From contig JAQFVV010000009.1 of NCBI GenBank assembly GCA_028023455.1, positions 12,772,001 through 12,836,000 on the forward strand: DNA of 64,000 nucleotides, read 5' to 3'. The stretch is from Epiperipatus broadwayi. Its lineage: Eukaryota > Animalia > Onychophora. This document shows positions 5,921-64,000 of the stretch, one piece after another. How positions within the stretch are numbered: position 1 is the first letter of the stretch; every line of letters begins with the position of its first letter. Position numbers and translations under genes: made by a program. The notes under the pieces were generated by a model, which was not told the DNA's origin, made no database searches, and saw only the letters and a program-made list of their open reading frames with translations.

Positions 5921-8625
5921 CCATAAGTTGTGTAACTACAAATAAACAATCTCCTATATGCCTATCTGACCTAAAACCTCCTTGCATTTTCCCCATTACA
6001 TTAGTCTCTTCCATCCATTTTACAACTGTTCCAGCCACCATATATGAGAAAACTTTCTATAAAACTGATGTTATCGCTATCGGTCTATAATTATTTGAAC
6101 TTTCTATGATCCTTACCCTTTCCTTTAAATAATAATCTTACTCTTGTATTACTCCAACTACCTGAAAAAACTCTCTTCTGTGCCATCTTATTAAAACATA
6201 ATAATAACTTTGCTTTTGCTCTATGCCCTAAATTCATTACCATCTCTGCTGTCCATCCATCTAAACCTCTCACCTTTCCAATCTCTTCCCTGCTTCATTC
6301 AGTTAATTTTTTGTGAACCTAACATTCTCATTACTAAATGCTTTCATGTTTTCTATCACTAAGTCCTTCACATCTAACATCTTTTCTATATCCATTACAT
6401 ATCTATTTAAGATTCTCTCTAACTCTTCTCTAGAGCTACATTCTATTCCCTCATCATCTATTAATACTATCTCTCTCTCTCCCCTACATGTCTCCTTTTA
6501 ATGTAATTCTCAAATTTTTTACTCCCATCTCTTCCACTTTTATTAATATCCTCCAGCAATTTACTATTCAACTTCATCCTCTCTCTTTAATTATCCATTT
6601 TAGCCAACTTTTTTAAAAAATACTTTTCCCATTTAGCATTTAATATCGTTTTCACTTTCTTTGTTCTTAATATCACACTTATATCCTCTGCATGCTTCTT
6701 TCCTCTCTTTTATACTTTTACTCTCATTTTTTTATTACTTTTATTCTTCTGCATATTCTCAAATAAAACCTTATTTGCCACTTTTTCTATTTCATCACAC
6801 CACTCCTTATACTCACCCCCAACCAACTGTTCCATGGCTTCTTCAACTTGTATTTTATACTCTTCCAACTTATTCTTATCATTCACTCTCCATCCACATC
6901 TTTCATTATTGTTTCTACCTTTATTTCTATCCTCTATCACATTACTAACCATTTCTATTACAATAAAGTTAGATCACTATTACATACTCTCTCTTCATTA
7001 TCAAACACTTTAATTTTCCGTATTTTATCCATTCCCTCTTTCTCTACCAATACATAATCTATTGTGTGAAATATATTATTCTTAGACCATGTGTATTATT
7101 CCTCATAAATATTTGATAAATTCCCAATGCTCAAATTTTCTCTTTGACAAAATTCCTTCAAAAACTGACCATTCTTATTATCTACATAATCAATTTCTTC
7201 ATTCATATCCCCTATAATCATTATTCTCTTCCTCTTTTCTTTAAAACTCTGTATATCCTTAACTAGGCATTCATATATACTACTGTTCCACTCCATTACA
7301 GTTTGACTATCTCCAGTAGCTATATACACTACAGCCACCTTCCATTCTTGTCTACCCAACCTTATTTCAAACCACAAATGCTCTTGACATTTAACAATAT
7401 TTAAATATTTTTTCGATATAACACCCATACACCATCCTTTTTCTTTTCTATTTGTTCCACATCTTCCAAAATAGGTTCTTCTTCTTCTCTTAGATGTGTT
7501 TCCACTACTGCTAATACCTCAAGCTCTTCATTTTCAATTGCTTTGTTTAATTCCAGCCACTTTTCTGGTCTCCTACCACCTTGCATATTCAAAAACCCAA
7601 TTTTAACAATTTCTTCTTTCCTAACTATCTTACCATTAATCTTACAGATCTATTCCCTCTCCACATCTACACTTATATCTAAATCAACCCTCTTTTGCTT
7701 ATTTCTTATATCCCATCTATTCTTCTTCTTTTTGATAATATACAAGCCCACCCTCCTTTAAAAGTTTCCTGAATTATATTCTTTAAACATCAGACTCCCT
7801 AAAACTTCACTTCCTTGCTTTCCTAAGTGCAATCCATCTTTACTATATAACTCCCTCTTTCCAATAAACCAATCCCATACATCCACAAACATATTATTTC
7901 TCTCATACAATTTTTTCATTCTTTCATTTATAGAACACACCCTATCTAACAAATGCCTCTTGTCAAATCTTGGTAATACTCCAACTACCCCTACTCTTCC
8001 TTTAATCTTACTCAAATTCCTAATCAATTGTACATACTCATCCAATATTCTCTCTGATGGCTCTGACAAATTATTAGTCCCTACCATAACATATACATCT
8101 CTATTATTGTTTTCTTACTTTATCTGTCACATTCCTAATTCTAGTTCCAGGCAAATATACTCTTATATACCTCCTATTTTCCCTTGCAATTATATCCCCA
8201 CATTCTCTGATTAGTGAACCTCCTATCAATACTGTCTCATAGTCTACTTTCTCTATTCCATATGTAACATTTTCTACCACCTTATGGACCTCCTTATCCA
8301 TTTCTTCCTTATCATTTCTACTCAATAATTCCTTTATCTGCTCACACTTTGTCTCTAACAATTTTAATTTTACTTCTACATCTTCACTTCTTCCTCTCTT
8401 ACTTATTCTCTGGCTAACCATCTCCATTGCATTACTACTTTCTTCACCCATATCTCCTGACACTCCACTAAAACCATACTGTGTCCTATCTTCCTTAACT
8501 ACATTTTGCTCCCTCTCCCCTGCCTTTCTCTCTAGCCTATTTACACTTAGAAACCACTTTCTCACCTCTTTTATCACATTTATGCACTGACTACATAAAC
8601 AGAAACTTGTTACACCCTTCATATT
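5921..8625 (-). mobile_element. RTE-X-like LINE, 5' half (ORF1 esterase, APE endonuclease, start of RT), 3'-truncated
   Basis: Broken ORFs 8104-8622 and 7758-8087 (ORF1), 7401-7592 and 7096-7428 (APE: FLNMQGG, VVETHL, IIGDMN) and 6091-6273 (KAKGLDG-type linker). 5921-6730 is homologous to 47329-48141 of the LINE copy at 45.6-48.1 kb. Confidence 0.85.
7758..8622 (-). pseudogene. LINE ORF1 with SGNH/GDSL hydrolase (esterase) domain, frameshifted
   Basis: SGNH blocks are visible: VLIGGS (block I, GDS variant), VGTNN (block III) and KDGLHL (block V), preceded by a coiled-coil-like region and a CxCxxC stub. Confidence 0.8.
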
Positions 8626-8850: not shown

Positions 8851-9273
8851 GTAAGTGATGTTATATATCTTTTTTTTCAGCATTTTATGACAAATATGAT
8901 GAAGTTGTTTATGAAAATGTTATTTTAACATTTATCTTTCAAAATTTAGAATTTGTGAACAAATGTAAAAACAAAACATTTAAAAAAGTATTAAAAAATC
9001 TTTTTTTTCTTAATTTTTTTTTGAAGTAATGACTATTTTATCAACTTTATTACATTCTTTCATATTTGCTCTTTCTAACTATGTACCTATTTTTATATTT
9101 ATTGCATTCAAACAGAAGATATATTGTAAATTATATTTGTTATAATTTTTTTTTAAATTCAAGATGGCGACTTGCAGAGGAGGGGGGGGGTTTAAGAAAC
9201 AAAATGAAAAAATTATAATTTTTTTTTCTTTAAAAACTATAGCTATCAAAATATTTTACTATAAATATGCTTA

Positions 9274-9507
9274 TGCGCTTTGCAGATTTTAACTATAAAT
9301 GACTGAATACTAACACTTCAAACACATGATAAAGTCTTTGGGAAAAGATAGAGTGGCCACTCTATCTTTTCCCAAAGACTTTATCATGTGTTTGAAGTGT
9401 TAGTATTCAGTCATTTATAGTTAAAATCTGCAAAGCACATGTGCAACATCTTAATGCTGTTTAACTATTACAGTTTATAAACATCGCACTATATAAAATA
9501 ATTGATT
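9274..9507 (+). mobile_element. Palindromic non-coding retro-insertion (335-bp-monomer family) with 14-bp TSD
   Basis: Spacer-less perfect 160-bp palindrome 9277-9436 centred on TGG|CCA; TSD TATAAATATGCTTA at 9260-9273 and 9508-9521; same sequence family as 19191-19957. Confidence 0.9.
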
Positions 9508-11104
9508 TATAAATATGCTTAATAAAATATTTACTTATTAATTCAAATATTTATATATTTTGAATTTAAAATAAATTAATTCTTTCTCCATAGGAACTCA
9601 TTCTAATTGTTTATTTTTTTTATATGTAAGGTGATTGATTTTTGATGCATTTTGGGCATCAATTGTCACTACAATTCCAGAATAAAGGTGTGCAAAAAAG
9701 GTTTGGTTAAAAAACTCATGTGATTAGATCTAAGGTATGCAGAGATGTTTTAAAAACAATAAAAATTTAAAAAATCCATAATAACATAAATTAAACCATT
9801 AAACATAACACAAATTATTATGTTTAACTAGAATGAATATTATAGATTGGTTAAATGAAATCCAGTTAACAAGAATATGTTTAAAATTCCAAAAATGTAT
9901 ATTTGTCACAGAATTGAAATATTTAAAACATGTGGGCTGAAAAATTAAATAGCATCAAATATCAATTGTTAATAAATTAGTAGATTAACTGAGTAGATAT
10001 CATGTCTGAAGAAATGTTTTAAATATAATATAAAGATATAAAAACTGAACAGTTCAAATTATAGTGACTATGTAGACATGGAATGAATATGATATGAAGA
10101 TCTTTGATTGAAAGGTATCATGAGAAATATGGGTGATAAAGAAAAATAAAAATAATTTGAAATATCACTAAGGAGGAAATCAAAAAATAAGATAGACAAA
10201 AAAATAAATAAATAGAAAGATTGAAATACTATAAAGCAAGAAGAAATCACATTTATTATGTAAAAAAAAGAAAGAAAGAAGATAATGTTAAAAGGAAAAC
10301 ATTTATAGTTAGCTACAAACTGAAAATTACAAATATAATGGCATGGGGGAATGCAAATAGTCAAATAATAATTAAAAGACTTTTTTATTATTATTAATAA
10401 ATTCAACTAGTTTTAAAAAATTATAACTTCAAAATTACTTGCTTATTAAATAAATGAAATAATAAAGCCTGTTTCCTCAATTTGAAAATATTTTTTAAAA
10501 ATTTACTAAAAAGACTGACAATTTCAAAAATTATTTTTCTAGTTAAAACACAGACATATATAGGATTACAATAATGTTTTATGTCTTCAGATTAAAAAAA
10601 AAAATACATATATATCTATTTGAAAAAGTCAATAAATATATAATAAAACTTTTTGTCATTAAAAAAACAAAAACAAGTAATATTTTCCTTAAGGTTTGCG
10701 ATGATGCTATTTTTGTAACGACATTCAATACTTAATATTAGATGATGGAAATAGCTCAATGTATAAATACACAATAAGTAATGTTTAAAAACATGATTAT
10801 GCTCAACAATAATGAAGAAAAAGTTGAAATATTTTTCCCCATTCACGATGAATTTATACTTGATAAATTGCAATACAAATCTGTAAACTAAAATCTTAAG
10901 GGATACAATTGAAAATATAGTAATCAAAACCAAATGACTATTTAACTCAATACATGTGTGCATATTTATAAATATATAAATAATATCATAACAGCCAAAG
11001 TTCAAATCTGCACAGAAGTTTTAAATAAAGCTGTTTGAAGGTACATTAATCAATAATCATTTTTACAATAATTATTTTGAATTATTTCCATTACTTGAGA
11101 GTTG

Positions 11105-18999: not shown

Positions 19000-20300
19000 C
19001 AAGTTAAGTGTCTAGGCAATAGTGGGATAGAAAGATTTTTATAAAAGTTCTTAGAGAGAGATAATTTATTTCTGATAATTTATACAAGAAATAGCATAAC
19101 TGCTTAGAAAATATACTATATGTCTATAATTTTGAGAGGTATTACAAGAGAATGTATAGAGTTATAGAAGAATTAAATATAAATATAAAATAAATCAATT
19201 ATTTTATATAGCGCGAAGTTTTATAAACTGTAATAGCTAAACAGCATTAAGCTGTTGCACATGCGCTTTGCAGATTTTAACTATAAATGACTGAATACAA
19301 ACACTTCAAACACATGATAAAGTCTTTGGGAAAAGATAGAATGGCCATCTATCTTTTCGAACCCAAACTCTTTTGTATGGGCAAATCTTAAGTGTCTGAA
19401 AGTGAAAGCTTGAAGATATTAAATAATCACTAATATCTTCATGCTTTCACTTTCAGACACTTAAGGTTTGCCCATACAAAAGAGTTTGGGTTCGAAAAGA
19501 TAGATGGCCATTCTATCTTTTCCCAAAGACTTTATCATGTGTTTGAAGTGTTTGTATTCAGTCATTTATAGTTAAAATCTGCAAAGCGCATGTGCAACAG
19601 CTTAATGCTGTTTAGCTATTACAGTTTATAAAACTTTGCGCTATATAAAATAATTGATTTATTTACATATATTTAATTTCAAATAAGAATGATGTATCGT
19701 AAATTCTAGTAATTTTCACCAGCGTCATTCATTCAAGCATGTAAAAGTAATTTAAAGTGATTATTTAATATCTTCACGCTTTCACTTTCAGACACTTAAG
19801 ATTTGCCCATACAAAAGAGTTTGGGTTCGAAAAGATAGATGGCCATTCTATCTTTTCCCAAAGACTTTATCATGTGTTTGAAGTGTTTGTATTCAGTCAT
19901 TTATAGTTAAAATCTGCAAAGCGCATGTGCAACAGCTTAATGCTGTTTAGCTATTACAAATATAAAATATAAAACAATGTATGATAACTAGAGAAAACTT
20001 ATTATTTGATGCAAGGGTAGGAGCTTTGGGTATGAAGGAAAGCAGGCAAAAAAGGGATATAAATTTGAATTATAGATATGGAAATAGGAGGCAGGGTCTT
20101 ATATATATATATTTTGGTATATAGAACACTAAAAGAGGATCAGAAGAAATAAAAAGGTGAAGAGAATAAAAGAGATAGAGTTATTTTGGTTAGACCATTA
20201 TAATGAGAATGGGGAATATGAAAATAGTATATTGAAACCAACAAAATAGCTTTTATTAAATTAGATTAAAGGGGGTAGAGACATCAGTACAGAGAGAATA
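19000..20300 (+). mobile_element. Decayed RTE-X-like LINE 3' fragment, split by the palindromic insertion at 19191-19957
   Basis: Removing the insertion restores 'ELYRRIKYKY..MYDN..LFDARVGAL', similar to the 'IYRSKQNI..IYDNSKESSLLFKARTGSL' C-terminus of the LINE at 44.7-44.9 kb. Confidence 0.5.
19191..19957. mobile_element. Inverted-plus-tandem array of a 335-bp non-coding monomer
   Basis: Near-perfect hairpin 19191-~19660 (loop AATAATCAC, 19422-19430) followed by a head-to-tail repeat (taatatcttc at 19431 and 19766, period 335 bp); candidate TSD AAATATAAAA (19181-19190, 19958-19967). Confidence 0.9.
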
Positions 20301-21480
20301 ATTTGATGTTTGTAGATTGGAAAGTACCAATAAGTTGGAATAAGTGAATGTATTTATATTGGTACAAAAAAATTTTGGAGAGAGAAAATTTTAACTTGGC
20401 TAAAAGTCTCTAGCTATATGGCCAATGTATCAAAACTTTTGATTATTCAAAAAAAGCCATATTACATCATATCATATCACAAACAAGTGATAACATATGA
20501 TTATTATTGGTGGTAGATTGCCACTGTTAAACACCCTCTTAACATAGGTTATTTTCTTATCTCAATATTTACTTACAATGTATAAAGACATTCTAAATAG
20601 TTTGAGATTCTGATATTGATTGTTTCACAATTAAAAAAGTAAATTTTTAAATTGTCAACAAGTCAACTCTCTCTCTCCCCCCTTTTTTTATATATATATT
20701 AATTTCTTTAAATGGTTAGTTTAAATAAGTTATATACATATATAAATTATCTTTTTTTATATGACTAGATCCGTGATAATCATTACCCCCCCCCCCACAA
20801 TGCATATTTTTATAAACTGCAATATGATAACTTTTCATGTTATAAATTCGAATTATATATATGTTTAAAAAAATAAAGTAACAAAATTTTTAACATTTAC
20901 TGGATATTTTAAAATTTGCACTTATGAAGTATATGGTTCTTCTAAAAAAGTTACAAATAATTTTGTGACTTTAAAATGTTAGTCATTTTGTGAGTGATAA
21001 TAAATATTCCAAAAGAGTGAATGAAAAAAAAACTCTTAACAATAATAAAATGTATAGATTCATTCATTATGGTTTTATTGCTTAAGTTGAAGCACCTGAA
21101 GTGAAGGATAAGTGTAATCCATAGGCTTTAAGCTCCATAGTCTGCCCATAGCATTGATTCACACAGTAAACTGAATCATTGGAAAATGTAAAAACTTACT
21201 TTGAATTAGGTTATTCTAGAAAAATGCTATTTATTATAGTTACCAAGATTTATTAATTTGATGTAATAAAATAACTTGCAGAATCAAACTTTTTAAAAGA
21301 CTGACATTTACAAAGTCAAGATTTACAATAGAATGCTAATACATTGTACAGGCTTAAACCTGCACTTATATATGTAATATATGCAGGTTCGAACTCAGAC
21401 TTTCACACGATCCACCACTCTAAGTGCCATCTCATATTGCTGACCCATCTGATCACACACATGTTGAAAAGATAAATAAT

Positions 21481-21526
21481 CACCAATATACATATTTCAT
21501 GCTAAACCAGTAATCATCAGTTGATC
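21481..21526 (-). ncRNA. Minimal type I hammerhead ribozyme motif (partly decayed)
   Basis: GATCAA CTGATGA TTACTG GTT TAGCAT GAAA TATGTA TA TTGGTG: core intact, stem II weakened. Confidence 0.65.
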
Positions 21527-22030
21527 TAGATTACTATCTTCACACATATATATAATCAGTACTCAGCTTTATATTAAGATAGCCAATCTCTATACCTTAA
21601 TGGACAAGCTTCAAACTATTCCAACTCACAACTCTTTAGCCTTCCATTTCATTGAAAATCTGATGATGCAATATTCAAAGCCCTTGTTAGTGCCAAGGTT
21701 GTCATCCTACCCATACTGACATATTAGTCATTCTGACCCCTCATGTACAGTGTGTAAAAGGTCTGCCCATCCCTCACATATGTATGTATAAATGGATTAT
21801 TCTCCTGTACATGAGGGGTAAGAATGACTAATATGTCAACATGGATAGGATGACAACCTTGGCACTAACAAGGGCTTTGAACGTTCCATCATCAGATTTT
21901 CAATGAAATGGAAGGCTAAAGAGTTGTGAGTTGGAACAGTTTGAAGCTTGTCCATTAAAGTATAAAGATTGACTATCTTAATATAAAGCTGAGTACTGAT
22001 TATATATATATGTGTGAGGATAGTAATCTA

Positions 22031-22076
22031 GACCAATTGATGATTGCTGGTTTAGCATGAAATACATACATTGGTG
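22031..22076 (+). ncRNA. Hammerhead ribozyme remnant (core mutated, probably inactive)
   Basis: GACCAA TTGATGA TTGCTG GTT TAGCAT GAAA TACATA CA TTGGTG: C3->T and U16.1->C changes. Confidence 0.55.
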
Positions 22077-22384
22077 ATTATTTATCTTTTCAACACGTGT
22101 GGGATCAGGTGTGTCAGCAATAGAATGCTAAGTAAAGCTTAAATGTTATGCTAGGCAATGTAAAATTTTATTTCACGTACTGACATATACATTTTAATGA
22201 TGCTGGTTTCCTTAAAGTTTATAATGTTGCTTTAAATTTGTAAAGCTAAAAAATATATTAAGAATAAGGCAGGTAATAACAAGCTACTATCAATGATGAT
22301 CAGGTACTACTGTCTACTTTGTAAATCTGCCTTCAGGCAGAAAACTCATCATAAATATTCAAACAAAATAGTTTATATATTTCA

Positions 22385-34491: not shown

Positions 34492-34586
34492 ATGTTCATA
34501 GCATCGGCCGGAAAGCAAACCTGCTAACCCGGGACAACTGCTTGTAAGGCAGCTGTGCTGACCTCTCGACCACCAATGCTTTACAT
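34492..34586 (-). mobile_element. tRNA-Gly-derived short SINE, copy 3 (anticodon position TAC, T-arm insertion)
   Basis: GCATTGGTGGTCGAGAGGTCAGCACAGCTGC-CTTACAA-GCAGTTGTCCCGGGTTAGCAGGTTTGCTTTCCGGCCGATGC; fully paired acceptor stem; flanks ATGTAAA / TATGAACAT; A-rich tail; possible 8-bp TSD AAAAATAT. Confidence 0.8.
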
Positions 34587-44325: not shown

Positions 44326-45630
44326 ATGTGATGTGATGTGATGTATTTTGGCTTCTCCTTAAACGAAGTCAAGAATATCTCAGCAATTATGCCCAGATAA
44401 ACCTGTTAGCCATTTTATTCTCCATTCCCCACTCTCAAGTCTCCCCATATTCTGCCCCATCCCATTTCCACAACATAATCTTTGTCAACTCTATGGCCTT
44501 TATATCTAAACCCCCCCTTATCTCTTCGAAAACCCAACATAAAAACTAATAACTCACTTTCTGTATAGTCACTTTGTTCATGTCTATTTCCCCATAACTT
44601 CATTATCTGTACCCTTTCTGCTTTCAAGCATTTACATTCAATCAACAGGTGCCTAATATTTTCTATACCTTCCTTACACAATTTGCACACTAAATTATCC
44701 ATGGTTTTTCATTTACATGTATATTCTCTTGTTGCTAAAGATCCCGTTCGAGCCTTAAATAATAAACTACTTTCCTTACTATTATCATAAATTAACTCGC
44801 ATGCAATATTCTGTTTACTTCTATATATATTTAAACTCTTCTTACCCTCCATACTAGTTCTCCATCTCTCCAACTCCCTATTTTTTATTAATGCTTCTAT
44901 TCTTTTATCCCATTCCTTACCACTATAACACTCAACAATCCTCCAACACAATCATCCCATCTTTTATACAAGTATATTGATATAAATTCTTTATCCAAAT
45001 CTTTCGCATACCGCATTACCTTTCTCACCCAACTTGTTGCCTGACCTTTATTCATAACCCAATTGAACACTATTTTTGCTATTCTTTTACTATCCATAAA
45101 CTGCAACCTACCAAACATTTTCATTTTACTTTTTGCATCTCTCATATAAAAACTTGACCATCCCATTTCTCTTTGAATTGCCTCCTTTGCTGTCCACATC
45201 TCTGCATCTAATGCATGTCTTCCTACTTCCCTTTGTACTTTCTCTAAATAATCTAAAACTCTTTTACTAACCCATAATGCATCATTACCATATGTTAACC
45301 CTGCTACTGCAACTCCCTTCCATACTATTCTAGCTACATCATATTTATTATATGAAAATACTGTTAGTTTCTTTACCAAACCCTTTCTTTTCTTTGCTTC
45401 ATTTACCAAGTTTTTCTCCCATTCATCCAAGCAATTTTCCTGATTACATAAGATGATTCCCAAATACCTATATCTATCCACCACACTTAACTTTATATCC
45501 CCCAATAAAAATTCTACATCTTCTCTTTCCCCAGTATTTACCATCATTATATTTGATTTTTCTTCACTAAATTTAATCCCCATCTCTTTACCCACCCTTG
45601 CACATGTCCTCAACATAATTTCCATATCTT
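44326..45630 (-). mobile_element. RTE-X-like LINE 3' copy A (5'-truncated, 1.3 kb) with (ACATC)n tail
   Basis: ORFs 44897-45625, 44709-44951 and 44415-44702 (CKLCKEGIENIRHLLIEC); tail atgtgatgtgatgtgatgt at 44326-44344. Confidence 0.92.
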
Positions 45631-48141
45631 ATGTGATGTGATGTATTATGGCTTCTCCTTAAACGAAGTCAAGAATATCTCAGCAATTATGCCCAGATAA
45701 ACCTGTTAGCCACTTTATTTTACATTCCCCATTCTAAATTTACCCATAATCTGCTCTATCCCATTTCCACAACATAATTTTTGTCAACTCTATAACCTTT
45801 ATATCTAAATCCCCCTTATCTTTCCCCAAACCCAGCATAAAAACCAATAATTCACTTTCTGTATAATCACTCTTTTTATATTTATTTTTCCACAACTTCA
45901 TTATATGTACCCTTTCTGTTTTCAAACATTTACATTCAATTAACAAATGCCTAATATTTTCAATTCCTTCCTTACATAATTTATAAAATAAATCAGCCAT
46001 ATTTTTCCATTTAAATGTATATTCTTTTGTAGCTAAAGATCTCGTTCGAGCCTTAAACAATAAACTACTTTCCTTACTATTATTATATATTAACTCACAC
46101 CTAATATTCTGTTTATTTCTATATATATATTTAAAATTCTTTTTACTCTCCATACTATTTCTCCATCTCTCTAACTCCCTAGTCTTTATTAATAAATTTA
46201 TTCTTTTATCCCATTCCTTACTACTATAACACTCAATAATCCTCTTAACACAATCATCCCATCTTTTGTACAAATATACGGATATAAATTCTTTATCCAA
46301 ATCTTTTGCATACCACATTACCTTTCTCACCCATCTTGTTATCTGCCCTTTACTCATAACCCAATTAAATACTATTTTAGCTATTCTTTTATTATCCATA
46401 AACTGCAATCTACCAAACATTTTCATTTTACTTTTTGCATCTCTCATATGAAAACTTGACCATCCCAATTCTCCTTGAATTGCCTCCCTTGCTGTCCATA
46501 CTTCTGCATCCAATGCATGTCTTCCTACTTCCCTTTGAGCTTTTTCTAAATAATCTAATATCTTTTTACTAACATATAATGCATCATTACCATATGTTAA
46601 CCCTGCTACTGCAACTCCTTTCCATATAATTCTAGCTACATCATATTTATTATATAAAAATACTGTTAATTTCTTTATCAATCCCTTTCTTTTCTTTGCT
46701 TCATTTATCAAATTTTTTCTCCCATTCATCCAAATAATTTTTCTCTGATTACTTAAAATAATTCCCAAATAACTATATCTATTCACCACACTTAACTTAA
46801 TATCTCCCAATAAAAATTCTACATCTTCTCTTTCCTCAGTATTAGCCATCATTATATTTGATTTTTCTTCACTAAATTTAACCCCCATCTCTTTACCCAC
46901 CCTTGCACATGTCCTCAACATAACTTCCATATCTTCTCTTTTTTCTGCACACAAAAATATATCATCCACAAAAAAAAGACCTGACAAAATATATACTCCC
47001 TTACTACCTATTAACGGTATTTCTATCCCTCTTCCTAATCTTTCTATTGCTCTTTCCATTTCACTCAAATACAACACAAACAAAATAGGTGACATAGGGC
47101 ATCCTTGCCTTAGTCCCACACCATTTTTAACTTTAATTGATTCTATATTCTCTAATTGATATATATAATAATTATTTTCATATAATTTCTTAATAATATC
47201 TATTAAAGCTTCATCCATTCCCAAATTTGCTAAACTTATCCATAATCTATTTCTATTTATTCTATCATATGCCTTCTCTATATCTATAAAACTCATATAT
47301 AACTGTTTACCTGCATTCCTACTCATATCCATAAGTTGTGTAACTACAAATAAACTATCTCCTATATGCCTATCTAATCTAAAACCTCCTTGCATTTCCC
47401 CCACTACATTATTCCCTTCCATCCATTTTACAACTTTATTAGCCACCATATACGAGAAAACTTTATATAAAACTGATGTTACCGCTATCGGTCTATAATT
47501 ATTCAACTTTCTATGATCCTTACCCTTTCCTTTAAATAATAGAATAACCTTACTCTTGTATTACTCCAACTACTTGGGAAAACTCTATTCTGTGCCATTT
47601 TATTAAAACAGGATAATAACTTTATTTTTGCCCTATATCCTAAATTCATTACCATCTCTGCTGCCCATCCATCTAAACCTCTTGCCTTCCCACTTTTCAA
47701 TTTCTTCTCTACCTCATTTAGTTCATTTTCTGAAAAGCTAATATTCCCATTACTATATTCTTTCATATTTTCTAACATTCTATCATTCACATCTAACATC
47801 TTTTCTATATTCATTACATAACTATTTAAGATTCTCTCTAAATCTTCTCTAGAACTACACTCGGTTCCCTCATCATCTACTAATACTAACTCTCTCTCCC
47901 CTAAATTTCTCCTTTTAATATAATTCCAAAATTTTTTACTCCCATCTCTTCCACTTTTATTAATATCCTCCAACAATTTACTATTCAATTTCATTCTCTC
48001 TCTATAAATATCTATTTTAGCCAATTTCTTCTTTTCTAAGTACTTTTCCCATTTAGCATTAATATCTTTTTCACTTTCCTTATTCTTAATAGCACACTTA
48101 TATTCTCTACATGCTTTTTTCCTTTTTTTTACACTTTTACT
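45631..48141 (-). mobile_element. RTE-X-like LINE copy B (5'-truncated, 2.5 kb) with RT domain and (ACATC)n tail
   Basis: ORFs 47503-48024 and 45740-47506; tail at 45631-45644 abuts the 5' end of copy A directly. Confidence 0.93.
45740..47506 (-). CDS. Non-LTR reverse transcriptase (ORF2 fragment, 588 aa)
   Basis: RT motifs NYRPIAV, QGGFR, FIDIEKAYD, GLRQGCPMSPILF, FFVDD and YSYLGI; C-terminal zinc knuckle partly decayed. Confidence 0.92.
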   Translation of the reverse strand: MNNYRPIAVTSVLYKVFSYMVANKVVKWMEGNNVVGEMQGGFRLDRHIGDSLFVVTQLMDMSRNAGKQLYMSFIDIEKAYDRINRNRLWISLANLGMDEALIDIIKKLYENNYYIYQLENIESIKVKNGVGLRQGCPMSPILFVLYLSEMERAIERLGRGIEIPLIGSKGVYILSGLFFVDDIFLCAEKREDMEVMLRTCARVGKEMGVKFSEEKSNIMMANTEEREDVEFLLGDIKLSVVNRYSYLGIILSNQRKIIWMNGRKNLINEAKKRKGLIKKLTVFLYNKYDVARIIWKGVAVAGLTYGNDALYVSKKILDYLEKAQREVGRHALDAEVWTAREAIQGELGWSSFHMRDAKSKMKMFGRLQFMDNKRIAKIVFNWVMSKGQITRWVRKVMWYAKDLDKEFISVYLYKRWDDCVKRIIECYSSKEWDKRINLLIKTRELERWRNSMESKKNFKYIYRNKQNIRCELIYNNSKESSLLFKARTRSLATKEYTFKWKNMADLFYKLCKEGIENIRHLLIECKCLKTERVHIMKLWKNKYKKSDYTESELLVFMLGLGKDKGDLDIKVIELTKIMLWKWDRADYG

Positions 48142-49880: not shown

Positions 49881-50864
49881 ATGTCTGAGATGCTGAGCCC
49901 ACAAAGTATCTTTTTACCTGTATATAATTTTTAATATGGATAAGTAAATTGACATAAAAAGACAATTACAACAACTTTCCTAAATATATTATAGACAATG
50001 TTTATTAAATGCATAGAAGCAGATTTGCCACGTAACACCACTTAAGTACTATGCTAATCAATATATTTAATTTATTTTGTGAATTGTGTTACTACAGGAC
50101 TAGTACATGATGCTCAGAACCTTTCTGTAAGTTAATTCTGAGTGCATTTAATAACAACAAAAATATTGAAAAAAAATGTATTGCATGTTATAGTGCAAAG
50201 TGAATAGATTATTAGAAAAAAATATGAATGAAATTTTATTTAAAATAAATTTATTTACAAAATTTGTATTTTTCTTGATTTCATCTAATTCAACAAATTT
50301 TTCATTTGCAATAGCTAATCAAGAAAAAAATCTTTTGCCAATTAATTATGTCTTAAATTTTTTAATGATGATAATAAAATTTAAAAAAAATATTTTTTTT
50401 TGTTATTAAGATCATAAATTGATTCATAAAAATAAATATTCTTAAGTGCACATAAATGAACTTTAACATGCTGTGCAAATAATGGACATAATTTCTAATA
50501 TGAGAAGTTTTATTAATTTGCATTTAAAGAATGGTAGACTATAATAAACTATACTTAATGATAATATAGTATCTGTCTTCAAATAGGAAGGTAAGAATAT
50601 TTAAAATTTTCTTGAGGTCAAATTCTGACTAAAAATGAAGACTGTAATAAGTTTGTATAAATGTGTTTGTAAGTTTTGAAGATACTACATGAGGATGAAT
50701 ATAAAAAGTATAGATAAAATGAAAAATGACGAATGATAATTATAATATATATATACTTTTAAATGTGGGGGATTTGAACTCAGACTTTAAAGCACCTTAC
50801 AACTATCCACACTATCTCATATCATTGCTACACATGATCATACACATGAAAAATGATCAATAAT

Positions 50865-50910
50865 CACCAATATATGTATTTCATGCTGAACCAGCCCTCA
50901 TCAGTTGGTG
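50865..50910 (-). ncRNA. Minimal type I hammerhead ribozyme (best-preserved copy)
   Basis: CACCAA CTGATGA GGGCTG GTT CAGCAT GAAA TACATA TA TTGGTG: 6-bp stem I, intact core, stem II 5/6, UA cleavage site, short stem III. Confidence 0.8.
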
Positions 50911-51631
50911 CAGATTATCATCTCTCACACATACATATAATCAGTGCTCAGTTTATATTAAGATAGCAAATCTTCATACTTTAATGGATAGGCTTCACTC
51001 TACTTCAACCTCCAACTCTTCAGCCATCCATACCATTGAAAAATCTGATGATGGAAAGCCCAAATCCCATGCTGATGCCAATATTGTTGTCTTGCCCATG
51101 TTGTTGTCCTCATGTCATTTTCACCCCTCATGTACAGGATCATATCAATTTAAATACATAGAAGAGGGATGCAGGCTTAATGTTTAATATTTGAAATACA
51201 GGCACTCTTCATACACCTGTAGCCTAATTGTAAATATAGGGGATTTGAATTCAGACTTTCAAGTGTCTTACAACTATCCACACTATCTCATATTACTGAT
51301 ACACATGATCACACACATGTAGAAAAGATCAATAATCACCAATATACATATTTCATGCATGGTCCTGTACATGAGGGGTCAGAGTGACTTGAGGTCAACA
51401 TGGGCATGACCTGTACATGAGTGGTCAAGTGACTTGGGGTCAACATGGGCATGACACAATATTGGCATCAGCATGGGATTTGGGCTTTCCATCATCAGAT
51501 TTTCAATGGTATAAATGGTTGAAGAGTTGGAGTTTGAAGTAGATTGAAGCCTGTCCATTAAAGTATGAAGATTTGCCATCTTAATATAAACAGAGTACTG
51601 GTTATATATGTGTGTGAGAAATGATAATCTG

Positions 51632-51677
51632 GACCAACTGATGAGTGTTGGTTCAGCATGAAATATGTATATCAGTG
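51632..51677 (+). ncRNA. Minimal type I hammerhead motif (stem I decayed)
   Basis: GACCAA CTGATGA GTGTTG GTT CAGCAT GAAA TATGTA TA TCAGTG. Confidence 0.6.
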
Positions 51678-52273
51678 ATTATTGATCTTTTATACATGTG
51701 TAATCATGTGTATCAGAGATATAAAATAGTGTTGATAGTTGAAGAGTGCTTGAAAGTCTAAGTTCAAATCCTCTATATTTACAATTAGGTTCCAGGTATA
51801 TGAAGAGTGTCTGTATTTCAAATATATAATTTTAAAACAATCTTGATTAAAAAAAATAAACTGCTTATTGCTTACAAAAATCTTTATAATTTATAAAAAT
51901 GCACCTTTTCAAGATGAAAAGTAGAAATTATTTATTTATTTCTTATAACTTATAAATACTAAAAATATAAAAATAGTAAAATGATAGTGTAAAAAATAAA
52001 ACAAAATTACTTGCTTTAAATAAAACATTTGAAGAAAATTCATATTAAGAAAGTTGCTGATAAAGAGTCTTGCAGGTAGTGGTAGCATAACCTACAAATT
52101 GAGTCTAGGTGTTTTCGAGGTTTGTGATAATGGTGTTCTAGTTGTATTTTTATGCTGGATTATTTCCATAATCTAATACGTGTATTGAATGTCTTCAGAA
52201 AAATTTAACTTTATGTAAATATTCCAAATACATTCAACTGTTAGTAATAGCACATCAAACAGGTTAATATATG

Positions 52274-52316
52274 CACAATGTTTCGATGGGTATTATTCTC
52301 CCCTCTTCTTCAGGTG
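52274..52316 (-). ncRNA. Penelope-type minimal hammerhead ribozyme
   Basis: CAC CTGAAGA A GAGGGG AGAATAATA CCCATC GAAA CA TT GTG: 3-bp stem I, stem II 5/6, stem III A-CA-T (probably CpG-decayed ACGT). Confidence 0.65.
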
Positions 52317-52346
52317 TTGCTGGCCTGACCAGTGACAGTACAGCAT

Positions 52347-52424
52347 GGGTTTTGAACCTGGGTTCTTAGATTCTTGATTATTGAATTTTTAAGGTAACAC
52401 TCTAACCAACTGAGCCATCCTGCC
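52347..52424 (-). promoter_or_regulatory. tRNA-like Pol III module (A box TGGCTCAGTTGG, B box GGTTCAAAACCC) in the PLE 3' region
   Basis: Near-consensus A and B boxes; decayed homologues at the same relative position in the PLE fragments at ~11150-11215 and ~56680-56760. Confidence 0.7.
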
Positions 52425-52680
52425 AAAGGCAACAATCAGTAGAAATTTCATATACTTATCTATGAGGTTCCTCCTGATTTCTCCACTTTTTCCTAAGAGC
52501 AAAGTTTATTAGTGGTTTCCATACATTATGTATAGTCACACTAGGTTGGCTTATAGGATTTTTTGCCATTGTCATGTGAGTAGCTTCTTTAAATTTTATT
52601 TGTATTATTTCTTCTCTGTCCAATATTTTTGTAGTTTCCCAATTGAACATATATTCATGGTATATACATGGTCTGCTAAT

Positions 52681-61147: not shown

Positions 61148-61538
61148 ATACCCCCCTCCCAGAAGCCTTCAAATATGGTCTATGGATTTGAATGGCGCCT
61201 AAATTTCGTGAACCATTCGTAATGGCATGAGCTTGAGGGAACGAGCATTGTACAATCCCCTTACTCCTGCCCAGTATTTACCCAGAATGCATTATCCCCT
61301 TGACACTTAACAATAGGGAAAGATTCCTCATATAAACTGCAAAATTTCTTACAGATAAATTTCCCATGTTCGCTCACATGTGGGGTTTTCACCATCATCA
61401 TTAAACCGATGAGGCCTTTCTAGTGTATGTTTGTTTCTTTCCTGACTCCTCTTCAAGGGTGTATGATATGCCTGCTCTTGGTCCTCCTCCACATTTATTG
61501 GCATTTCCTTTGGCCCTGGTATTTTGGCCTTGATTAAT

Positions 61539-62081
61539 TTAGGGGCATGTTTGCCAAACTGGAGCAGCACAGGAGAACTCTGTGGACTCGTTAACTGCCC
61601 AATTTATGTAGTTCAGTATTTCTGGAATCTTTTTAACCCATCCTCGGTGATTAGTTGGGATGTAAGTCCTAAACAACCTACCCAACTGACACATCACCCG
61701 CTCACATGGGTTCGATTGCGGATTCCTAATTGATGTCAGTATGTGTTGAAGCCCTGACTTCTGAACCCATGCTTGCCATTCTCCAGAGATAAATGGTGTG
61801 CTATGATCCGAGAGGATGCTTTGAGGTTTTCCTATCACCGTAAAATATTCCTTTTCAAGGAGACATATGGTGTTTCGGGTATTTGCTTGAGTCATGGGAT
61901 ATGCAGCCACAAATTTACTGAATAGATCATACACCACCAACAAATATTTTTTTCTACTAAAGGCCGGCAATGGTCCATAATAATCTATTGCAATCATCTC
62001 ACGTGGCTTCTTTGGGATTATGGAGCTCATTGCCCCTGCATAATTCCTATTAGCAGGCTTGCTTTTTTTGACAAAGTTCAC
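61539..62081 (-). pseudogene. Gypsy integrase core (rve) fragment
   Basis: D(IDYYG)-D(SDH)-E(CER) catalytic triad. Confidence 0.9.
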
Positions 62082-62235
62082 ATTGGCTGATCATCCTCAC
62101 AACAGTCTTATGCATGCCTCGCCGATAAAACCACTGTCTAAGGCACTTTTCAGTTTTCCACACCCCATAGTGTCCATATATTTGGTGGAAATGAGTCACC
62201 ACGGCATTCCGCATTTGCTGGAATATTACAGGTCT

Positions 62236-62955
62236 TCAACTTTCCGGTCCCCTTTTCGTTCTGTATTGGAGAACAGCTTGGTCAAGTTTGTATCGGTTGA
62301 TCCAACATCTGGACTCATCATTGTTTTCTCTTGTGTTCCTTTCCAGTTGTGTGATTATTTGACCCAACTGGGCATCCTTCCTCTGATGCTGGGCCAATCT
62401 CTTAAGATCATTCTCTACCCCTTCATTAACCCTTAAGTTTATTCCTACCACATATAAATTTTCAGCTTTAAGATGACATGATGGCAAACACACTGGGTTA
62501 TGGCTAAGAGCATCAGCTACAATGTTATCTGACCCCTTACAGTGCTTTACCACATAATTATACTCTTGGAGGTATAGGCTCCACTGCACCAACCGACTAT
62601 TTGTCAGATAACTGTGGTTAATAAATTCTAAACTCTTATGATCCATAACCACAATTATTTTTGATCCCAACAACAATGTGCGGGGTTTTTGGAATGACCA
62701 AACAATGGCTAAAGCTTCCTTTTCTGTGGCAGTGTAATGACGCTCAGGACCCTTGAGCAGCCTAATTAAGAAATACAGCACTTTCACTTGACCATCCTCT
62801 TGAATCTGTGATACTGTTGCTCCCAGCCCATACCTGCTGCTGTCAGTCTGCACCACAAAGGGTTTCTCAAAATCAGGAAAAACCAGCATTACATGTTTCA
62901 TGAACTCTTGCTTCACCTTCTCAATGCCTGGCTTTGCTTTTCGCCCCACTCCCAC
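62236..62955 (-). pseudogene. Gypsy RNase H domain fragment
   Basis: D-E-D RNase H motifs as listed in the ORF translation. Confidence 0.9.
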
Positions 62956-64000
62956 ACTACATCTAATCTAACTAGTGGTTCCATATGTTGAGCAAACTGC
63001 TCCTGAAAACAGGTTGTAGAAGTTACACATACCCAATAAGGATCGTATCTGCTTCTTGGACCTAGGTGCTGGGAAACCTTCAATGGCTGAGATTTTATCT
63101 GGATGTGGCGGGACACCCTGCGATCCTATAGGTGGCCCAAGAATGTAACTTCCTCTTGAAAGAGAACACTTTTCTTCAGGTTTACCTTGATCCCTTTATT
63201 CCAACATTCCCTTAAAAACATTTCCACATCTTTGGTATGTACTTCCACAATATCCGATGCCACCAATACATCATCCACATACATTGTAACTATTTCCTTG
63301 ACCTCATCAGATAATACCCGGTCTAAACATCGCAGTAAACTGGCCCCACTGTTAATCAGGCCGAATGGCATACTGTTAAGCTGATATGAGCAGCCATCAT
63401 ACCTAAAGGCAGTTCACTTACGATCTTTTGGGTGCAGTCTTATCTGCCAATAGCTTGCTGTCAGATCAAATGTTGAAAAAATTTTTTTTCCTTTAGATCT
63501 CCCAAGCAATTCTTGCATGGGTGGTGGTATGTTACAATCTGGGACTGTGACTTTATTCAATTGCCTCGCATAGAGTCATAACCGAACGGAATTATCCTTT
63601 TTCTTGATGACAACTATCGGGTTACAATAAGCTGAGGAGTTTTTTGATATAATACCATATTCCAACATTTGATCTATCTGCTCCTTCACCTGCTCCCTAT
63701 ATTGATGAGAAATTGGGTATGATTTTGCCTTAAATGGTTGTTTCATTTACCTGAATCCTTTGTTCAAACCCTGGGATCATGCCTGGCCTGTCTGAAAATA
63801 CCTGATTGTATTCCTTCAAGATCTTTCTTAGTATTTCCTCCCCCCCCAGCAATCTTTGCCTGGTCTATTTTTTCTGTTATCAAGTCATCATTGTGTTTAT
63901 CAGCAACTTGCACAGCTCCTATTGGACAATCTGTGCTATCCATTATAAATTTAACCACCTCTCCATTACACGTGTCTTGTCTACGTTCGTAGTTCAACTT

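Follow-up and report, generated by a model that had tools for sequence, protein, structure and literature searches.

How can a short non-coding repeat end at one and the same nucleotide in separate insertions and still be read straight through at that nucleotide in a tandem copy? This question is raised by a 335-bp repeat unit in a 64,000-nt stretch of genomic DNA from the onychophoran Epiperipatus broadwayi (contig JAQFVV010000009.1 of assembly GCA_028023455.1, positions 12,772,001 to 12,836,000), which is referred to here as the window and is numbered from its first letter. The window has a G+C content of 26.8%; it is AT-rich and strongly CpG-depleted, which identifies it as eukaryotic DNA. 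A first-pass annotation made from the sequence had read the unit as a retrozyme-like or satellite-RNA-like element whose end is set by an unrecognized mechanism, and had singled it out as the best candidate for an undescribed system in the window.

Searches with nhmmer and BLAST identified two insertions of the unit in the 64-kb window, which we call copies A and B. Unit coordinates are counted from 19431 as position 1, with a period of 335. In copy A, a repeat search revealed an inverted repeat with 234-nt arms (19188-19421 and 19431-19664; 99% complementary, with a gap of 9 nt) and a direct repeat (19431-19623 versus 19766-19958; 99% identity, spacing 335). These two repeats bear out the inverted-plus-tandem array with a period of 335 bp described in the first-pass annotation. 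An exact 12-bp target site duplication (TSD), AAATATAAAATA, flanks the array at 19181-19192 and 19958-19969, and the insertion that constitutes copy A is therefore 19193-19957. The right end of the span given earlier (19191-19957) agrees with this boundary; its left end does not, as the TSD sets the start at 19193. Copy A thus defined consists of a 238-nt inverted arm followed by 1.57 direct units of period 335, and the direct arm runs from position 1 through a full unit to position 192 of the next. Its parts are as follows:

19181-19192, unstranded: left TSD of copy A, 12 bp, AAATATAAAATA (exact match to 19958-19969)
19193-19430, minus strand: inverted arm, running from unit position 229 (the outer end, which is the fixed terminus) inward to position -9 (inverted repeat)
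19422-19430, minus strand: foldback loop, the last 9 nt of the inverted arm (inverted repeat)
19431-19765, plus strand: first full direct unit, 335 nt, with an internal copy of the terminus at 19659/19660 (direct repeat, sequence reading)
19494-19522, plus strand: internal hairpin with a 9-bp stem and the palindromic loop ATGGCCAT, present again at 19330-19358 and 19829-19857 (repeat search, folding)
19643-19664, plus strand: TATA-like box TATATAAAA (19643-19651), terminus ...AATTGATT (to 19659) and TATTT (19660-19664), the proposed start site of reverse transcription (sequence reading, TSDs, variant table)
19660-19765, plus strand: 106-nt "spacer" between the terminus and the next core, found family-wide (bridging contigs, variant table)
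19766-19957, plus strand: second direct unit, partial, stopping at unit position 192 (99% direct repeat, TSD boundary)
19958-19969, unstranded: right TSD of copy A, 12 bp (TSD comparison)

The inversion centre of copy A is a 9-nt loop within an AT-rich, nearly palindromic stretch, and the reverse complement of 19420-19430 was found, on reading the sequence, to match 19757-19767. Repeat and nhmmer searches of the full 64 kb identified no long array.

Copy B (9274-9507) is a palindrome without a spacer, with arms at 9268-9356 and 9357-9445 and 0 nt between them. It is flanked by an exact 14-bp TSD, TATAAATATGCTTA, at 9260-9273 and 9508-9521, and it is composed of the following parts:

9260-9273, unstranded: left TSD of copy B, 14 bp, TATAAATATGCTTA (TSD comparison, repeat search)
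9274-9356, minus strand: inverted arm, unit positions about 79-161 (abutting inverted repeat; BLAST and nhmmer matches to the unit)
9357-9507, plus strand: direct arm, unit positions 79 to 229, stopping at the fixed terminus ...AATTGATT (sequence reading, TSD, nhmmer)
9508-9521, unstranded: right TSD of copy B, 14 bp (TSD comparison)

The centre of this palindrome falls inside the unit's own hairpin, the one with loop ATGGCCAT. Among random window pairs, the chance of an exact flank match is 2.5e-4 for at least 12 bases and 5e-5 for at least 14 bases. Long TSDs of variable length, which the first-pass annotation had named as something to look for, are therefore present, both of them exact, at 12 bp in copy A and 14 bp in copy B.

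The two copies share one outer end to the nucleotide, at unit position 229 (...AATAATTGATT; ...AATTGATT). The second outer end stops short of this terminus, by 37 nt in copy A (position 192) and by 69 nt in copy B (position 161). Copy A's direct arm passes the terminus at 19659/19660 and continues, via the 106-nt spacer, into the second partial unit. Thus, the earlier claim of one fixed end holds at single-nucleotide precision in copies A and B (n = 2 insertions, plus contig break points), where the two ends are the only ones seen directly and the rest of the evidence consists of indirect contig break points. The tandem copy indeed reads through the terminus at 19659/19660, in agreement with contigs from three sequencing runs, and the multimeric template that had been proposed for a non-coding retroelement is supported by this read-through together with the period-335 tandem. 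Read along the sense strand of the element, each TSD opens with TAT (TATAAATA... and TATTTTAT...), and the read-through sequence opens with TATTTAC. Target and template therefore have 3-5 nt of homology just behind the terminus, when the first letters of the TSDs are compared with TATTT.

The same boundary is supported by public sequencing runs. Four DNA runs of one sample of the same organism contain the locus (0.79-0.86 of sampled words), and parts of the unit were also found in runs that are probably RNA or of unknown kind, under two organism labels. Logan contigs from four runs, which are contigs and not reads, were aligned at 85% likeness to a single permuted unit (19560-19900). DNA run X1 alone yielded 7,742 unit pieces, 24% of which were at least 99% alike. 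The 335-bp family is very abundant and partly young or recently active, where abundance is stated only as thousands of distinct contig pieces, since summed contig depth is no copy number. Contigs of three runs span both 19660 and 19766 (19640-19776, 19638-19777, and 19661-19811), indicating that read-through at the 335-nt period is the normal form of the family and not a peculiarity of this locus. The stretch that holds the TATA-like box and the terminus (19638-19669) carries no variant at 10% or above, and the most variable stretch of the unit lies in the spacer (19693-19725).

Among the longest pieces, contig ends gather at 19659-19663 in all four runs. Contigs in the four runs also start at 19659-19663 and head rightward into the spacer, which indicates that the sequence on the left-hand side differs among copies as well. 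Simple 3' termini do not account for these rightward starts. The contig data support a family-wide boundary at the terminus, at which ends are not countable from contigs. In the probable RNA run X8, one contig exits the unit at 19665. The probable RNA runs (their kind is guessed) contain fragments of the unit, some of them within longer transcripts, in contigs that cannot show circles or ends. Separately, a join of 19841 to 19574 is common to contigs of two probable RNA runs (again of guessed kind) with different organism labels. This join corresponds to a 67-nt deletion from the hairpin centre, has depths of 344 and 1108, and in one run lies within a contig of 1.5 kb, as though an old copy carrying the deletion sat in a transcribed, conserved locus.

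We also assessed the sequence character of the unit. The observed/expected ratio of CpG is 0.63 in copy A and 0.36 in copy B, compared with 0.25 in the whole window, so that the unit, described at first as young and CpG-retaining, answers to that description in copy A. The first reading had found no open reading frame (ORF), tRNA head, or poly(A) tail, and the searches concur: the 335-nt unit has no ORF longer than 34 aa, ARAGORN and Rfam find no tRNA in it, and no poly(A), microsatellite tail, or LINE tail was found on it. The 34-aa ORF has no record in the protein collection that was searched, and exact-pattern scans for further unit copies in metagenome, viral, and prokaryotic genome collections returned 0 matches. 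Both small hairpins named at that stage are present, as judged by sequence reading and folding. The only promoter-like stretches are the TATA-like TATATAAAA at 19643-19651 and a B-box-like GGTTCGAA (8/11) at 19488-19495, which, as sequence motifs, are only suggestive of promoter elements. The unit lacks the hallmarks of a SINE, having neither a Pol III head (tRNA, 7SL, 5S) nor a LINE-matching, A-rich, or microsatellite tail.

A fixed end, an inverted arm, and a partial tandem inside one TSD are features that have been described for Penelope-like elements (PLEs). Insertions of PLEs are highly 5'-truncated, often form partial tandems, and often adjoin an inverted 5'-truncated copy, with a tail of 30-40 bp at one end (Craig et al. 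2021, PMC8557442). Palindromes at the inverted junctions have been reported, as have TSDs of 8-10 bp, in a rotifer, and unrelated sequences moved in trans between pseudo-LTRs (Arkhipova et al. 2013, PMC3846280). At AT-rich sites, purified PLE protein cleaves both DNA strands and extends them, and its reverse transcription begins at internal RNA sites, where extra RNA beyond the site leaves the product unchanged (Frangieh et al. 2024, PMC11167929). The same study proposed a multi-copy mRNA as the PLE template and found that hammerhead mutants insert equally to wild type, which makes hammerhead cleavage dispensable for PLE insertion in vitro (PMC11167929).

The 335-bp family displays most elements of this footprint. 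Copy A contains a partial head-to-tail tandem (pseudo-LTR-like) of period 335. In copies A and B, an inverted 5'-truncated copy adjoins the direct arm head to head, and the junction is palindromic. A single short TSD, which varies in length, encloses the composite in AT-rich DNA (chance, 2.5e-4 or less), and the 3' end falls at what would be an internal start of reverse transcription, which is read through in multimers (n = 2 ends seen directly). Apart from the missing hammerhead, the structural traits of the family have already been described, and with a PLE as its mobilizer the family would not represent a new class. The designation as an undescribed system is therefore not sustained, as the layout and the palindrome at the inversion are the published PLE footprint (PMC8557442, PMC3846280). 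Nor does the end call for an unrecognized mechanism, since a fixed end that is read through is the product of internal initiation by PLE reverse transcriptase (PMC11167929). Of the three ways of setting the end that had been put forward (a divergent ribozyme, a nuclease site, or a priming site for reverse transcription), the priming site fits best. Collectively, these data make it fairly likely that a PLE protein, with its reverse transcriptase and GIY-YIG endonuclease, mobilizes the 335-nt unit in trans, and that this unit is a non-coding, non-autonomous retroelement without a hammerhead. Among the window ORFs of at least 70 aa, none has a GIY-YIG domain, and the window has no PLE-type ORF or gene.

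A second repeat in the window has a similar architecture. The repeat at 21340-22117, with a unit of about 470 nt, forms a head-to-head inverted pair (arms 21541-21750 and 21805-22014, and 21435-21554 and 22003-22122) and is flanked by an exact 14-bp TSD, CAATAGAATGCTAA (21326-21339 and 22118-22131). Its two outer ends differ from each other, a trait shared with the 335-bp family. This shared layout and the 14-bp TSD in an unrelated family suggest that one insertion machinery serves several families here. Kinship between the two families was considered and rejected, because a look-alike stretch (AAATAATCAC...TTCATGCT) aligned locally no better than shuffled sequences do.

A reverse transcriptase of another kind might also produce an inverted arm. 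In this case, the unit would be a SINE-like passenger of a LINE, inserted by target-primed reverse transcription, and twin priming on a tandem transcript would give the inverted arm. Twin priming is known to cause 5' inversions in L1, and it likewise leaves an inverted 5' part in a single TSD-flanked retro-insertion. AP-endonuclease LINEs typically insert at AT-rich targets and leave TSDs of 12-14 bp, the 3-5 nt shared by target and template point to annealing of a primer, and LINE genes are present in the window. However, twin priming inverts the upstream neighboring segment, whereas the two arms of the 335-bp family span identical unit positions, converge on a palindromic motif, and have no poly(A). 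The unit also has no Pol III head and no poly(A) or microsatellite tail, and no similarity to its final 80 nt was found in any LINE of the window, the LINE 3' end at 45620-45740 included. Tandem read-through is not a SINE trait, and the same foldback layout recurs in the second, unrelated family at 21340-22117. We therefore consider mobilization by a LINE unlikely.

The only long reverse transcriptase ORF in the window (45740-47506, minus strand, 588 aa, RVT_1) is LINE-like. Its nearest solved relatives are L1 ORF2p and R2, and no relative above 35% identity was found in a collection of 5.8 billion proteins. The 3' end of this LINE (...ACATCACATCACATAA) is unlike the terminus of the 335-bp unit. 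In this region (44897-48024, minus strand), the LINE is directly followed by another copy of its family, which is 5'-truncated. The right flank of copy A (19970-20500) resembles the 3' untranslated region of that LINE family (GAATGGGGAAT...; ...ACATCATATCATATCAC), and copy A may, by this resemblance, have landed beside or inside an old LINE copy. Other remnants of mobile elements were observed in the window. A 109-aa ORF at 7758-8087 (minus strand), 1.2 kb from copy B, has a below-cutoff match to GDSL/SGNH lipases (27.5 bits, E = 5e-6) and might be an esterase-type LINE ORF1. At 61349-63371 (minus strand) lie remnants of an LTR-retrotransposon pol, with integrase core, RNase H, and reverse transcriptase domains in separate ORFs. 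At 34500-34579 (minus strand), an Rfam tRNA match barely above the gathering score (32.2 bits), for which ARAGORN makes no call, is probably a tRNA-derived repeat head.

The terminus could alternatively be made by cleavage of RNA. Cleavage at 19659/19660, by a host nuclease or a self-cleaving motif of a new kind, would give a unit-length linear or circular RNA, which would serve as a rolling-circle template, as in an analog of a retrozyme. The length of 335 nt is within the range of animal retrozymes (170-400 nt; PMC7229834). The rightward contig starts at 19659-19663 in the four runs look as if the 5' and 3' ends of copies both lie there; these break points, on the unexpected side, are the only hint of processing at 19659/19660. 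In addition, the RNA of the unit is more structured than shuffled sequences on both strands (z = -3.4 and -3.0). The value of -3.4 would suit a structured, self-cleaving RNA, and yet these z-scores do not discriminate between the readings. The sense strand also brings together a GAAA, a 9-bp hairpin, and a UH, like the 3' half of a hammerhead with the 5' box missing. This resemblance to a hammerhead 3' half would likewise favor a retrozyme analog; as a grouping of short motifs, we regard it as a curiosity.

The ribozyme searches argue against RNA cleavage. At the gathering score, Rfam returned only one tRNA-like match in the whole window, outside the unit. With the threshold relaxed to E of up to 10, a search of 19100-20050 returned no hammerhead, twister, pistol, hatchet, HDV-like, or other ribozyme; the matches obtained were generic microRNA-precursor models only, which are due to the long hairpin of copy A. 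The CTGANGA box is absent from both strands of the unit. Likewise, scans of both strands for a hammerhead core of the form N-UGA-N-N-A, allowing any paired combination of positions 3 and 8 (including swapped pairs) and followed by stem II and GAA, found none. The failure to find a hammerhead core by eye is thus upheld by the CTGANGA scan, the scans for core variants, and Rfam. Rfam likewise found no hammerhead in the region 50650-52600 (E of up to 5), where the claimed CTGATGA box and GAAA are only 2 nt apart.

Other observations point the same way. Apart from a trivial join at the cut of the reference, the RNA contigs included none that was unit-length or back-joined. The differences between the two copies at the GCGC pair and in the AACAGC hairpin are due to CpG decay or single breaks; none is compensatory, in a comparison whose two copies are too few for covariation. 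Moreover, internal initiation of reverse transcription gives a fixed end without cleavage. Measured against animal retrozymes, the family has tandem non-coding monomers in the range of about 170-400 nt but no type I hammerhead in each monomer. We thus regard an RNA-processing origin of the terminus as improbable, and a ribozyme-free or new-ribozyme counterpart of retrozymes, with RNA cut at 19659/19660 and a circular or multimeric form of it templating the tandem cDNA, as distinctly improbable.

A DNA-level event, in which pieces of a 335-bp satellite or extrachromosomal circle were captured at staggered breaks or a foldback/MITE transposon inserted, would suit the very high copy number, the tandem period, and the foldback shape, but is very unlikely, because the ends lie at unequal unit positions (229 versus 192; 229 versus 161) and so define no terminal inverted repeats, the TSDs are of unequal length (12 and 14), two independent insertions share one end to the nucleotide, and no long array is present in the window. 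Features expected of two specific classes are missing: a foldback/MITE transposon would have identical termini and a fixed TSD length, whereas the termini here are unequal and the TSDs measure 12 and 14 bp; and a Helitron/Helentron satellite would insert without a TSD, whereas exact 12- and 14-bp TSDs were found.

For mobilization by a PLE protein, we infer the following sequence of steps from the observed layout, TSDs, and shared end. Tandem source copies would be transcribed into RNA exceeding one unit. A PLE ribonucleoprotein would nick both strands of AT-rich DNA 12-14 bp apart, and the freed 3' end, ...ATA, would pair with the UAU behind position 229, such that cDNA synthesis would begin at a fixed internal site, after ...AAUUGAUU. 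With a fixed internal start, one end would be constant and yet would be read through wherever the template ran on. The opposite DNA strand would prime a second cDNA at a less defined site, which would give the variable end. Both cDNAs would have the same polarity, and a template jump would join them, either at the palindromic motif (copy B, loop ATGGCCAT) or end to end (copy A, 9-nt loop). The outcome would be a head-to-head foldback, with a partial tandem in addition where the template was multimeric, and no ribozyme would be required. The TATA-like box just upstream of the start site would place a promoter at the 3' end of the unit, pointing outward. If so, only tandem or partial-tandem copies could act as sources, which is speculation at this point.

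Comparison to described systems places the 335-bp family close to several known groups. With PLEs (Penelope/Poseidon, Neptune, Naiad, and Chlamys), it shares the partial tandem, the adjoining inverted 5'-truncated copy, the palindrome, the short variable TSD, the AT-rich target, and the fixed end inside a multimeric template. PLEs, however, carry a reverse transcriptase/endonuclease ORF between the repeats, whereas the 335 nt here are wholly non-coding. The TSDs measure 12-14 bp here versus 8-10 bp in the rotifer. PLEs may have a 30-40 bp tail at one end only, owing to two start sites of reverse transcription; here, the second ends lie 37 nt (copy A) and 69 nt (copy B) short of the terminus. 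Furthermore, the published PLE enzyme started at a site non-homologous to the cut DNA, whereas the 335-bp family has 3-5 nt of homology.

Non-coding passengers offer the nearest parallels in content. Animal tandem hammerhead repeats of 170-400 nt are probable PLE passengers (Cervera and de la Peña 2020, PMC7229834; preprint 10.64898/2026.07.22.740005). These non-LTR retrozymes, with their type I hammerhead, resemble the 335-bp family in that their units are non-coding, able to form tandems, and similar in size, that they are present in many copies, and that their TSDs are larger, and they differ from it in that the 335-nt unit contains no hammerhead of the core variants searched and no other known ribozyme. 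Non-autonomous Chlamys elements give rise to multicopy head-to-tail insertions (PMC8557442). Those of green algae (e.g., MRC1) are alike in being non-coding PLE passengers with pseudo-LTRs, head-to-tail multicopies, and no canonical hammerhead. Unlike the 335-bp family, whose host is an animal and whose PLE partner is presumed, the algal passengers have 3' ends in common with identified autonomous partners. Naiad PLEs of invertebrates are likewise without hammerheads (PMC8557442).

If the 335-nt unit is mobilized by a PLE protein, a very abundant animal repeat would be using a Penelope-type integration route without a hammerhead of its own. This would agree with the in vitro dispensability of hammerhead cleavage and with the hammerhead-free Naiad PLEs, and it would mean that ribozyme-based searches undercount PLE passengers. 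With one sharp start site and a palindrome that attracts inversions, the unit would also provide a short, clean substrate for the study of how PLEs choose their start sites and form head-to-head junctions.
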